Positions 6,437 to 53,315 of a DNA stretch of 64,000 bases are shown here, in pieces. The position numbers were made by a program, and so were the translations under genes. The stretch lies in the sequence record OQ992562.1; one strand, 5' to 3'. The notes beneath the pieces were generated by a model. That model worked only from the letters and a program-made list of their open reading frames with translations. It was not told the DNA's origin and did not search any database. How positions within the stretch are numbered: position 1 is the first letter of the stretch; the number at the start of each line of letters is the position of its first letter.

Positions 6437-6720
6437 AATAGACTCCTTTATTACAATGTAGCATAGATTCAGTTTTTTAACTGGAATTAAATGCCGATTT
6501 TGAAAAGGTGATAAAACCTTTTCTCATCTATAAATGAATTTATAATAGTAACAATGAATATAACCAGGGGTGGCAAACCCCTGGCATTTAGACACACTCT
6601 ATAATAAGTTCTACCACCGAGTGTGTTTAGTGGATAGATTTAAGAATACTTTATTATAGTACTCTTACATAATATCATCGTGCCAGTATAATTATCTAAA
6701 TAGTTATAAATATTATTATT

Positions 6721-9342: not shown

Positions 9343-9418
9343 TGGTCGGAGTGGGGAGACTCGAACTCCCGACATCCTGCTCCCAAAGCAGGCGCGCTAC
9401 CAACTGCGCTACACTCCG
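9343..9418 (-). tRNA. trnP: tRNA-Pro(UGG)
   Basis: CGGAGTGTAGCGCAG...CCTGC-TT-TGG-GA-GCAGG...CCA. Confidence 0.95.
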
Positions 9419-9427
9419 TATTTAAAT

Positions 9428-9512
9428 TGGTGCCCGAAGTCGGATTCGAACCGACAAGACCGTAGCCGGAAGATTTTAAGTCTTCTGTGTTTACCAATTT
9501 CACCATTCGGGC
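9428..9512 (-). tRNA. trnL: tRNA-Leu(UAA), long variable arm
   Basis: GAAGA-CT-TAA-AA-TCTTC, 85 nt, CCA end. Confidence 0.95.
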
Positions 9513-9570
9513 ATTGTGCTTCAATACATAACATGTAATGCTAGGTATTTTATTACAACTTATTTTAAAT

Positions 9571-10023
9571 TCAACGTGGCCATTGTAAAGAAGTTATCTT
9601 ATTACCATTAATGTAGACATCGGTCACTTCGCACCAATCATTAATTCTGTGTTCAATAATTGGAACATCATTTCGGCCAGCCACTCCAATCATATTCCAT
9701 TTAACATAAATATTCATTAGATCAATTGTTAATTTCTCTTTTATGAGTTTAGGAGAAATTAATTTAATATTATTAATGTTAAAGAAGTAATTATTAACTT
9801 CTTCTAAATATTCATTAGTATTAGTAGTACTAACTTTGCCTTCATGTTCAAGTGAGGATGGTTTATTCTGATTTACAATATTGCTCACTAGACTTCTTAA
9901 AACGGCACTTGCCCTACCAGCTTCGCGTCTTTTATACTTATCATAGTCTTTTACATTAGCTGCAATTTTATCAAATTCTTTTTGGGCATAGATTAGCCCT
10001 GGTAAAAGTTCATTTTTGATCAT
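9571..10023 (-). CDS. Hypothetical protein, 150 aa
   Basis: Long ORF. Confidence 0.75.
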   Translation of the reverse strand: MIKNELLPGLIYAQKEFDKIAANVKDYDKYKRREAGRASAVLRSLVSNIVNQNKPSSLEHEGKVSTTNTNEYLEEVNNYFFNINNIKLISPKLIKEKLTIDLMNIYVKWNMIGVAGRNDVPIIEHRINDWCEVTDVYINGNKITSLQWPR

Positions 10024-10071
10024 TTTATAATTACTCTATGTTGTTTATACATATTTTAATATACATACGTA

Positions 10072-10224
10072 AAAACAAAATATAAAGCCTCCCCGAAGGG
10101 AGGCGATATATCGTCATTAATGCCCAGCAAAGAGTTTTACTCTCTGGGAGCCAGTTGGAAGGGGGACTGGCTCCGATCTATTATGACTAATGTAGAAACA
10201 AGGGGGAGGGATTATTTCTACATA
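10072..10224 (-). ncRNA. Candidate structured small RNA with two C-rich loops, ending in an intrinsic terminator
   Basis: TATG start motif, four consecutive hairpins, loops UAAUCCCUCCCCCUUG and CCCCCUUCCA, U-tract on the minus strand only. Confidence 0.5.
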
Positions 10225-10236
10225 ATATTAGATACA

Positions 10237-12177
10237 TTACTGGTAGTTTTCATTACCCATTGCTAACCTACCTTTTATAGACCGATCTACCCATTTTGCG
10301 GCGGCCTCCATGATATCAATGAATGAGTGGTATTGCCGCATTTTATTAACTTCCATCACATCATCATCAATCCCAGGGCCAAAGCATGCGAATAACAAAT
10401 CATTCCAATCATAGTAATCGATACCAGCTATTGGACTAGGGTTATCCAACATATCGTAGATTAGTCCTTCCAGTGGATCTGGTAAATCAGGGAACTTGAA
10501 GCTAAGAGTTATCTGACGTTCCAATGCCGATATAATTAAGTTCATGGCCTTAGCTGCTTCTTCTTCAGTAAGAGCTTTGAGTTTACTATCAGTAGATGGA
10601 TATTTCGCGACCACGGTGCGAGGTGAATTATAGGTACCCTTACCTGTAATAGTACCGGCAGGCCATTTAACACTAGTCTTGAATCCAGCACGTGCCTTGT
10701 CTACGATAGCCTTTGCTTCTTTGTATACGTTAGCGTCTAGGTTATGTGCATTCTTAATGAGTAGATCCAATGCAGGTTTAGTCTTCTGCCTGTAAGACTC
10801 CATTTCGCGATTAGACTTTTCTTCGAGTTTGAAGAATGGTTCTACTGCACGAATGGCATCCTCGATACTGACTTTACCATTAATACTCAGTACGTTAGCT
10901 ATACCATTACTATTGATATCGCCAGTAACGAATACCTGCTTATTAAGCCATTGTGGATTGCCAAATGTAGATTCTAGTTGTTCCAGAAATCCTCTTGCAC
11001 TGGACGATGAACGCCAGATACGTTTCTGATCACCTCGATTAGAAATGCCAAGAACTTTTTTGATTGAATCGATAAGACCTTCATTTGAGACTTGTATAAA
11101 ACCGGGAGTATTAATGATGGACTTCTCTACATACCCGCCACGAATAACCCGATTTATAAAACCATTAAGACCACTACCAGTTTCGGCCATATCTTTCATG
11201 ATTTCTATATTCGTTTCACCGGCACTTTGGGCATTGTATAAATAATAAGAACCATCTTTGAATTTCAGTATAATCCAGTCATCCCCAGTTAGATATGAAT
11301 CAATATTACTATCATTCATACTTTGATATTTAATGAATTCTGGATTAGTACTTAATACTTCTTCAATGAATTCTTCTAATGCCGCAGAATTATTAATAGC
11401 ATCAACCGGTAGAATTTCACCATCAATGGGTTCAGTAGTTGGACCAGTAACAATGGCAGGTAACGGATCCTCCTCTACAATAACAGTTTCTTCCACTGGT
11501 AGAGCACCGCAAGATAAATCAATTAGTTTATTAAAACTACTAATGATCTCACCAAGTGCTACAAGAACTGCTGGCTGTTCAACTTGTTCAACTTTAGCAA
11601 TACCAGTTTCTGTAAATTCTTCAGTAATTCGGTTATAGACTTCCACTAATTGATTAGTAAGCTCTGCTACTTTTGGCAGAGTCTGCTTAGACAGAGGTTC
11701 AACTACAGTTGTATCTGCTTCAACAAAAATAGAGTCATCTTCTTCTAAACGGCTAGTATTAGCTGAGCCAGCTGTGAAGTTATAAGGCATATCTTGAATT
11801 ACTTCATTAATTTCAGATGCCTCCATATCTTCATTTAGACGACCACTATAAGTACGCATCATACCTTCTGCTTCTTTAATAGTGGAATGCGCTAAGCGTC
11901 CCCAATCACCACGCATAATACCGCGCTCGGTAAGACCGCGTGCAGCTGAACCAAGATCAATAGGTTCTTCAATAAATGATTGTTCTTCAACCCACTCTTC
12001 ATTACTGTAACATTCTTTTAGAATGGTTTTAAATTTAGTACTAAAGGGTTGTAGAATCTTTTTATCTACTTGTTCAACATTTGTTTTAAAGTGTTCTAGA
12101 CTTGGTGTAGCTTTTGAAGATACTTTTTCAGTACCGCTATATAGCGTACGGTTTAGGAAGTTTAGCATTTTATTCAT
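10237..12177 (-). CDS. Head (internal) protein, phiKZ gp303-like, 646 aa
   Basis: Size and position beside nrdAB; ALE/SNE/GNE protease-type sites; internal KTSC-like segment. Confidence 0.65.
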   Translation of the reverse strand: MNKMLNFLNRTLYSGTEKVSSKATPSLEHFKTNVEQVDKKILQPFSTKFKTILKECYSNEEWVEEQSFIEEPIDLGSAARGLTERGIMRGDWGRLAHSTIKEAEGMMRTYSGRLNEDMEASEINEVIQDMPYNFTAGSANTSRLEEDDSIFVEADTTVVEPLSKQTLPKVAELTNQLVEVYNRITEEFTETGIAKVEQVEQPAVLVALGEIISSFNKLIDLSCGALPVEETVIVEEDPLPAIVTGPTTEPIDGEILPVDAINNSAALEEFIEEVLSTNPEFIKYQSMNDSNIDSYLTGDDWIILKFKDGSYYLYNAQSAGETNIEIMKDMAETGSGLNGFINRVIRGGYVEKSIINTPGFIQVSNEGLIDSIKKVLGISNRGDQKRIWRSSSSARGFLEQLESTFGNPQWLNKQVFVTGDINSNGIANVLSINGKVSIEDAIRAVEPFFKLEEKSNREMESYRQKTKPALDLLIKNAHNLDANVYKEAKAIVDKARAGFKTSVKWPAGTITGKGTYNSPRTVVAKYPSTDSKLKALTEEEAAKAMNLIISALERQITLSFKFPDLPDPLEGLIYDMLDNPSPIAGIDYYDWNDLLFACFGPGIDDDVMEVNKMRQYHSFIDIMEAAAKWVDRSIKGRLAMGNENYQ

Positions 12178-12227: not shown

Positions 12228-12261
12228 CATAAACCCTCCCAATTAAGGGAGGGTCATTATG
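12228..12261. terminator. CATA...TATG family hairpin
   Basis: 22-nt core ACCCTCCCAATTAAGGGAGGGT is repeated at about 13907-13928. Confidence 0.7.
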
Positions 12262-13836: not shown

Positions 13837-13936
13837 ATCAGTTCCTTTACAATTTAAAAATATTTCTTACAATAAATAATAGAGGTTAGTATAAATTGGG
13901 AATAACACCCTCCCAATTAAGGGAGGGTGTATACAC

Positions 13937-19029: not shown

Positions 19030-19049
19030 CCCTCCCCTACCGATAATAC

Positions 19050-20108: not shown

Positions 20109-20209
20109 ATAAATTAGTAACACTTATTGGCGACATACACCCTCCCTTCGGGGAGGGCTTTATTTTCAATATAGATATATTTTTTTAATACATTAGTTGG
20201 AGTTTAAAA

Positions 20210-43561: not shown

Positions 43562-43593
43562 CATAAGCCCTCCCATTGCGGGAGGGCATTATG
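43562..43593. terminator. CATA...TATG family hairpin, convergent genes
   Basis: Same as 53266-53297 apart from a reverse-complemented loop (attgc vs gcaat). Confidence 0.75.
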
Positions 43594-49497: not shown

Positions 49498-49680
49498 ATT
49501 TCTCTTATTTATCTCTTTTCTTCTAAAAAGAAAATTATATAAATAGTATATTATGTGGGGGGGGACCCTTTGGGGGGGTCCCATATAATATTCCTTATTA
49601 TTAGAGAAGGGGTATAACCCATCCTTAGTTCGAGAATCTATTACTTTTAGTAATAAGGGATTGGCTATAAAAAGCCAATA
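49498..49680. other. Intergenic structured element: CT-tract, G8/G7 hairpin and further small hairpins
   Basis: G-runs at 49557-49564 and 49572-49578; related sequence in inverse orientation at 58828-58887. Confidence 0.55.
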
Positions 49681-53207: not shown

Positions 53208-53315
53208 TGATGGGTTATACCAGTATGTTTTTAAATATAGTGTTATTTAGATATTATCTTAATGGCATAAGCCCTCCCGCAATGGGAGGGCATTATGTCT
53301 TTTTTTTATTTTTTT

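Follow-up and report, generated by a model that had tools for sequence, protein, structure and literature searches.

Twin C-rich loops in a late RNA of a phiKZ-type phage that very probably is the published transcript TU237

What does a jumbo phage do with a small structured RNA that displays two G-free, C-rich loops between a head-protein gene and a set of tRNA genes? The question is raised by a stretch of 64,000 nt from sequence record OQ992562.1 (the window; all positions count from its first letter), which by sequence comes from a Pseudomonas jumbo phage of the phiKZ type. Positions 9500-10800 match several Phikzvirus records at 100% identity and phiKZ at 99.9%; in this region, window position plus 263928 gives the position in NC_004629. 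The element, at 10072-10224 on the minus strand, occupies the 213-nt gap between PHIKZ303 and PHIKZ302. A preliminary description, made from the letters alone, took it for a candidate small RNA whose loops might pair with G-rich ribosome-binding sites (RBSs). Our reading of the sequence is that the element is a real feature, already known as a transcript; the anti-Shine-Dalgarno function proposed for it is unproven. Features discussed below lie on the minus strand unless stated otherwise.

The transcript can be named. The phiKZ transcriptome was determined by ONT-cappable-seq (Putzeys et al. 2024, Microlife, PMC10914365) and contains TU237, which is 141 nt long, lies between genes upstream of PHIKZ302, has a start site of its own and ends at the terminator T131; a northern blot confirmed its abundance and length and also showed a full-length read-through form (PMC10914365). 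TU237 is one of 17 phiKZ candidates for non-coding RNAs (ncRNAs) derived from 5' untranslated regions (UTRs), and it was kept as non-coding when these candidates were screened for open reading frames (ORFs) preceded by a Shine-Dalgarno sequence (PMC10914365). The element lies where TU237 should, directly upstream of PHIKZ302 and on the gene strand. The gap contains one minus-strand intrinsic terminator, at 10104-10087, followed by a U-tract. The motif TATG, found here at 10221-10224, serves the phiKZ non-virion RNA polymerase as late promoter, and transcripts begin at its G, the +1 (Yakunina 2015, PMC4666361; PMC12809450). Counted from that G, at 10221, 141 nt end at about 10081, 6 nt beyond the terminator stem and in the U-tract; we infer a primary transcript at 10081-10221. 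TATG alone is frequent, and placement of the start at 10221 rests on the published ONT-cappable-seq result together with the fit of the 141-nt length. Location, strand, terminator and length all agree, and since the gap offers only one terminator the match is secure; there is hardly any doubt that the element is the published TU237/T131 RNA.

The discrete late RNA of about 150 nt that the preliminary description anticipated is therefore on record, as a 141-nt transcript seen by northern blot and by long-read sequencing and starting at a late-promoter motif. Its published start site likewise bears out the suggestion of a stand-alone transcript. Earlier phiKZ studies contain no report of the TU237 RNA, and PHIKZ302 goes unmentioned in the other literature consulted beyond Putzeys et al. 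2024. The TU237 of that study agrees with the element in genome, intergenic region, strand, terminator and a fitting length; the main text gives no structure, loop analysis, target or function. What is added here to a known transcript is the pair of twin loops, an island of conservation and a mosaic boundary at the TATG.

The predicted fold is strong: −55.8 kcal/mol for the 153-nt element (z = −5.97; 0 of 200 shuffles as stable) and −51.6 kcal/mol for the 141-nt transcript (z = −5.56). Such folding is not unusual for intergenic regions of phiKZ-type phages, as an ncRNA between PHIKZ298 and PHIKZ297 reaches z = −6.07 and the 201phi2-1 counterpart z = −5.05. The TATG stands 12 nt after the PHIKZ303 stop codon, and the four hairpins described as following it are all present. 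Hairpin 1 (10190-10223), at the 5' end, carries the 10-nt loop 1, UCCCUCCCCC, at 10202-10211. The 9-bp core first described for it is correct, but the fold lengthens the stem, to 10 bp in the primary transcript, where G+1 is paired at the base, and to 12 bp in RNAs that enter from PHIKZ303. Hairpin 2 (10147-10174) is exactly as claimed, with a perfect 9-bp stem, GGAGCCAGU/ACUGGCUCC, and loop 2, CCCCCUUCCA, at 10156-10165. The fold predicts no pairing at all within either loop (unpaired probability 1.0 for loop 1).

Hairpin 3 (10128-10146) also exists, but the CCCAG/CUGGG pairing proposed for it is less favoured by the fold than CAGAGAGU-AAA-ACUCUUUG. In PA7 (MZ444140), the sole divergent ortholog, a G-U pair of the CAGAGAGU/ACUCUUUG form becomes G-C, and a pair is broken in the CCCAG/CUGGG version. 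Hairpins 2 and 3 are enclosed in a central domain (10113-10187) by a 5-bp helix, GUCAU/AUGAC (10187-10183 with 10117-10113), that is absent from the preliminary description. Both arms of this helix are invariant, and it recurs when phiKZ, KTN4 and PA7-MZ are folded one by one, in the minimum-energy as well as the centroid fold of each. Hairpin 4 is T131 itself (10072-10104), with a GCCUCCC/GGGAGGC stem and UUCG loop (10104-10087), followed by UUUAUAUUUU in an interrupted U-tract, UUUAUAUUUUGUUUU; the terminator call is on the minus strand only, in agreement with the original claim.

One way to understand this layout is to locate the function of the element in cis, in the terminator and in the stability of what it releases. 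TU237 is abundant and is released at T131, and part of transcription continues into PHIKZ302 (PMC10914365). The genes so reached are PHIKZ302 (9571-10023), tRNA-Leu(UAA) (9428-9512) and tRNA-Pro(UGG) (9343-9418), with PHIKZ301 and tRNA-Met next on the same strand. By the published work, the non-virion RNA polymerase starts at the G of the motif (10221), most transcripts stop near 10081 at the UUCG terminator, and a fraction continues into PHIKZ302, tRNA-Leu and tRNA-Pro. On the cis model, a leaky, promoter-proximal T131 would then control the amount of PHIKZ302 and tRNA transcript made late, with the interrupted U-tract as the cause of the leak; the published read-through transcripts fit such a tract. 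Protection by terminal hairpins is a general principle of bacterial RNA decay. Here the hairpin that begins at +1, leaving no unpaired 5' nucleotides, and the terminator hairpin would guard the two ends against 5'-end-dependent and 3'-exonucleolytic decay, so that the short RNA would accumulate. One sequence may in this way serve three roles by virtue of its position: as a stand-alone RNA, as the 5' leader of the PHIKZ302-tRNA transcripts and as the 3' end of PHIKZ303 mRNA. We give a probability of about 0.45 to this cis role, a leaky terminator combined with stability, as the main function, which makes it the likeliest of the mechanisms considered.

The model has relatives. The small RNAs rnTrpL of Sinorhizobium and SreA/SreB of Listeria derive from an attenuator or from riboswitches and act in trans as well. 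Like TU237, they are short RNAs from premature termination in a 5' leader, with read-through yielding the full mRNA; unlike them, the element has shown no ligand, leader peptide or alternative fold. By analogy, it would resemble other promoter-proximal terminated leaders in its working.

The third of these roles could also be taken as the only one. PHIKZ303 (10237-12177, its ORF running from 12177 to 10237) encodes a virion structural (head) protein, and its mRNAs must run through the element and have their 3' end at T131, because no other terminator lies between its stop codon and T131. This is true for both alleles of PHIKZ303 that occur in the genus, and the alternative in the preliminary description, that the RNA derives from a 3' UTR, holds to that extent. 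The element might then be nothing but a processed 3' UTR, a stability element of a highly expressed structural gene with no independent transcript. This is very improbable: TU237 owes its definition to a start site, seen in data enriched for primary transcripts (PMC10914365), its 141-nt length fits the +1 of the TATG, and conservation tracks the downstream module, as the homology that begins at the TATG persists where the C-terminal region of PHIKZ303 has been swapped.

The last point comes from a comparison of eight aligned sequence tiers of Phikzvirus, in which no part of the locus other than the tRNAs is conserved as well as the element. The KTN4 tier differs at 4 of 153 positions in the element versus 8 of 48 in the adjacent spacer; PA7-MZ differs at 11 of 153 versus 24 of 151 third codon positions of PHIKZ302; and in T2P the element is 98-100% identical versus 62-85% for PHIKZ302. 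The TATG at 10221-10224, loop 1 and the T131 stem are invariant in all eight tiers. Loop 2 shows a single change, of its first base from C to U in PA7-MZ only, and its CCCCUUCC core is invariant; the loops are conserved, then, and not the terminator alone. The phiKZ, KTN4 and PA7-MZ orthologs, folded separately, share one architecture, in which G+1 pairs at the foot of hairpin 1; z ranges from −5.6 to −7.0.

Covariation across the genus, which had been put forward as a check, gives a mixed answer: the stems are kept, but with one compensatory pair there is too little diversity for statistics. That pair is in hairpin 1, where A-U becomes G-C (10213 with 10200). In PA7-MZ, hairpin 2 has two stem changes with pairing kept by wobble (G-C to G-U, U-A to U-G), and hairpin 3 has one change from G-U to G-C and has lost its terminal pair. 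The stem substitutions thus amount to one compensatory pair, three one-sided changes that preserve wobble pairing and one lost terminal pair, and 31 of the 36 base pairs never vary. The predicted structure fits all of the data, with covariation too thin for proof.

The same comparison reveals how the locus has been assembled. Of the 47 Phikzvirus records with this locus, 35 have a different allele of the C-terminal ~140 residues of PHIKZ303 (10225-10660), one that shows no homology at the nucleotide level. Nucleotide homology with these relatives resumes exactly at the TATG; the 5' end of the RNA is therefore, to the base, a mosaic (recombination) junction, and the RNA travels with the downstream PHIKZ302-tRNA module. 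In the T2P/U1B/U5 group, PHIKZ302 itself is diverged and longer (T2P 913-1392; 68% protein identity, 159 versus 150 aa), while the T2P small RNA upstream is 99% identical and the tRNA-Leu downstream is identical. A diverged PHIKZ302 set between a near-identical small RNA and tRNA-Leu makes the mosaic a very fine-grained one.

The interval between T131 and the start of PHIKZ302 has features of its own. It contains two more TATG motifs, at 10064-10067 and 10050-10053; the former is absent from the KTN4, Wadjak1 and PA7-MZ tiers and the latter is present in all tiers. Either could, judging by the motif, be an extra late start nearer PHIKZ302. The ribosome-binding region of PHIKZ302 (10030-10037), CAUAGAGU, is a near-repeat of the 5' arm of hairpin 3, CAGAGAGU (10139-10146), and by eye the 3' arm of hairpin 3 could pair with it at 7 of 8 positions in the read-through RNA. 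The likeness is probably a coincidence, as the changes in PA7-MZ do not compensate.

The loops themselves are rare. Each has 10 nt, neither contains G, and they have CCCCCUU in common. The preliminary description called this striking, and it is: the 64-kb window has CCCCCTT at two places only, and both lie in this element. In the 278-kb genome, taking both strands, there are five hairpins with a stem of at least 7 bp and a G-free, C-rich loop, hairpins 1 and 2 included, and the arrangement of twin G-free, C-rich 10-nt loops is unique. The only other hairpin in the window that combines a GC-rich stem with a C-rich loop is at 49562-49582, GGGACCC-CCCCAAA-GGGTCCC, which lies beside a run of eight C and is terminator-like.

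It is here that the cis role is least satisfying, and several considerations weigh against it. A cis-only role explains neither the retention of two 10-nt G-free loops with CCCCCUU nor the existence of hairpins 2 and 3. In prefix and ensemble folds nothing but the four hairpins forms, and no pairing competes for the arms of the terminator; lacking an antiterminator alternative of this kind, 'conditional' termination may be simple leakiness. The conservation of the element may in part reflect recent recombination instead of selection, the diversity among the tiers being shallow. Finally, the match to TU237 is drawn from where the element lies, its strand, its terminator and its length. It is chiefly the C-rich loops, unexplained in cis, that keep a second role, in trans, under consideration.

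A second perspective therefore supposes that the RNA pairs with other RNAs. RsaE, RNAIII and the cuckoo/CcsR RNAs use their C-rich loops to pair with G-rich RBSs, and by analogy loops 1 and 2 could be redundant seeds for G-rich single-stranded sites, such as RBSs of the GGAGG type, with repression of translation late in infection as the outcome. The properties that recommend the loops for this are those already described: full predicted accessibility, freedom from G, a shared CCCCCUU, uniqueness in the genome, and invariance of loop 1 and of the CCCCUUCC core of loop 2 in all tiers. The RNA that carries them is plentiful and starts at a site of its own (PMC10914365). The two C-rich-loop hairpins of the ar14 covariance model, moreover, align onto hairpins 1 and 2. 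Among the initiation regions of the 368 ORFs called in PaZh_1, an identical genome, GGAGG occurs in 3 (AGGA in 124, GAGG in 81, GGAG in 54, GGGG in 7), so that most phage mRNAs would be spared.

The same initiation regions count against phage targets. The loops pair with initiation regions at −5.73 and −5.35 kcal/mol, only slightly better than the −4.53 and −4.85 kcal/mol for coding sequence away from the starts (for the true 16S tail, −5.63 versus −4.08), but 21 regions per loop pair at −10 kcal/mol or better, versus 40 ± 12 for shuffled loop 1 and 29 ± 10 for shuffled loop 2. The best accessibility-corrected match is only −10.6 kcal/mol. With internal-sequence and composition-matched shuffled-loop controls, then, the 368 regions show no enrichment and no sign of either broad or specific targeting of phage RBSs, and the proposal that the RNA represses GGAGG-led early phage mRNAs finds no support in the three GGAGG regions, the shuffles and the weak best match. 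Exact 8-mer complements of the loops occur in the window only within terminator arms that are already paired. Hfq-dependent small RNAs have a terminator with a long uninterrupted 3' U-tail. The tail here is UUUAUAUUUU, and the 141-nt RNA would end in ...GGCUUUAUA, its true 3' end being known within ~2 nt only; UUUAUA would make a poor tail of the Hfq type. On balance, action in trans by base pairing is a tentative proposal, on the unlikely side.

A narrower form of the proposal moves the targets into the host. The twin loops would then be a phage 'anti-Shine-Dalgarno mimic', binding G-run RBSs or other G-run sites, common in a 66%-GC host and nearly absent from the AGGA/GAGG initiation regions of the phage. 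This is doubtful; if true, an abundant late RNA would silence host messages (or a few early phage ones) and spare phage translation, and it would be the first C-rich-loop regulator in the style of cuckoo or RsaE in a lytic jumbo phage.

Comparison with the small RNAs that inspired this idea supports a likeness of design. The cuckoo/alpha-r14/CcsR RNAs of alphaproteobacteria have tandem hairpins with C/U-rich loops of the anti-Shine-Dalgarno kind, as the element does; the hosts differ (here, a gammaproteobacterial phage), and nothing points to common descent. The ar14 model (Rfam RF02344) scores 19.7 bits in a 181-nt search, against a gathering score of 58.8 (E = 0.057). The cuckoo loop motif, CCUCCUCCC, is absent: the loops read CCCUCCCCC and CCCCCUUCC, with CCUCC in loop 1 only. 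Membership in the cuckoo/ar14 family is rejected on the sub-threshold score and the missing CCUCCUCCC. RsaE/RoxS and RNAIII of Firmicutes have multiple exposed loops of the UCCC type that pair with RBSs without a long single-stranded seed, and the element resembles them in this; neither RsaE/RoxS nor RNAIII gives an Rfam match at E up to 10, and the lineage differs. The resemblance to C-rich-loop small RNAs noted in the preliminary description thus stands for architecture, but not for family membership.

Rfam searches of 2 kb and of 181 nt gave sub-threshold matches only at E up to 10, those to riboswitch and T-box models being at the level of chance, and ARAGORN found no tRNA-like gene in the element. 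Outside Phikzvirus, no homolog was found by four routes: synteny of PHIKZ302, synteny of PHIKZ303 in 201phi2-1, and a loop-anchored pattern in IMG/VR and in metagenomes. PHIKZ302 is restricted to 47 Phikzvirus records; gp455/gp454 of 201phi2-1, in syntenic position, enclose a structured region with no C-rich loops; IMG/VR yielded phage PA7 only; and the pattern had at least 120 matches in metagenomes, of which those listed all appear to be due to chance, none of them combining stems at both loops with blastn similarity to the element. A parallel lies in the same genome. The PHIKZ298/297 ncRNA (6557-6667), reported by Gerovac 2021 (PMC8545117) and re-annotated by Putzeys 2024 (PMC10914365), agrees with the element in its tRNA-rich region, its strand, its strong fold (z given above) and its order of 5'-terminal hairpin, middle hairpin and terminator. 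It differs in having no C-rich loops, and no sequence similarity connects the two.

A further trans scenario made the RNA an antiterminator for the hairpins of the phage itself. CCCTCCC has 16 matches in the window versus 2 expected, mostly in the arms of palindromic hairpins, and the claim that the CCCUCCC of loop 1 is complementary to the GGGAGGG arm of this genome-wide family is correct, those arms containing exact complements of the loops. Palindromic CCCTCCC-N-GGGAGGG hairpins are found at 114-131, 12234-12253, 13908-13927, 20140-20157, 43568-43586 and 53272-53290, and orphan half-sites at 19030 (plus strand), 25494 (minus) and 28260 (plus); genome-wide, the family has 29 plus 27 matches. 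The palindromic hairpins are probably bidirectional terminators. The best loop duplex in the family, at −20.3 kcal/mol, is with the next terminator of the same operon, 8935-8921, which is itself in a hairpin. It is polarity that leads us to reject trans-antitermination. As in the 5' arm, C prevails in the loops, and they can compete only after the 3' arm emerges beside its own partner, which we infer to be kinetically implausible.

The partner of the loops need not be an RNA. A C-rich loop motif on stable stems might titrate, recruit or scaffold an RNA-binding protein of phage or host, and CCCUU is presented three times on such stems, within the CCCCCUU of loops 1 and 2 and as CUCCCUUC in the terminator. 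The stem structures are kept across the tiers, the phage initiation regions supplied no convincing RNA target, and other phiKZ ncRNAs sediment by Grad-seq in defined low-molecular-weight complexes. Against such a decoy, no protein partner is known, and the loops have neither GGA, the motif for RsmA, nor the A-R-N motif for the distal face of Hfq; we regard it as quite unlikely.

Finally, the C-rich loops might be codons. A stop-free frame of 36 codons, proline-rich (IPPP...), runs through both loops, with CCU CCC CCU in loop 1 and CCC CUU CCA in loop 2. Five of the eight tiers have AUG in place of AUA in this frame, and genes for tRNA-Pro and tRNA-Leu follow downstream; a leader-peptide attenuator could in this way sense the supply of proline-tRNA, or a small protein could be made. 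In phiKZ, however, the frame has AUA there and no ATG, GTG or TTG start; no Shine-Dalgarno sequence precedes it, and the transcript start is only ~10 nt upstream; the A-to-G change that creates AUG is one side of the compensatory stem pair; and the alternative antiterminator fold that attenuation would use was not found. The published Shine-Dalgarno ORF screen left this RNA non-coding (PMC10914365). The proline leader peptide is accordingly rejected, with almost no weight left to it: the frame (~33-36 codons) has 2 synonymous versus 13 nonsynonymous changes, a pattern that effectively refutes it. Each of the six frames has more nonsynonymous than synonymous changes, and by its substitutions the element is non-coding. 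On the plus strand, a 48-aa antisense ORF (10120-10266) that overlaps the PHIKZ303 stop has been annotated as a hypothetical protein (e.g. KEN49_CDS0045); with 5 synonymous and 10 nonsynonymous substitutions, it is probably an overcall.

Almost no small RNA of a strictly lytic phage has a known target. The transcript described here has been re-discovered, and the value of the analysis is a sharper, testable hypothesis about its two unique loops and not a new element. The twin loops have no counterpart elsewhere in the genome and are conserved throughout the genus, and they offer a precise handle by which a role in trans may be separated from that of a terminator in cis.

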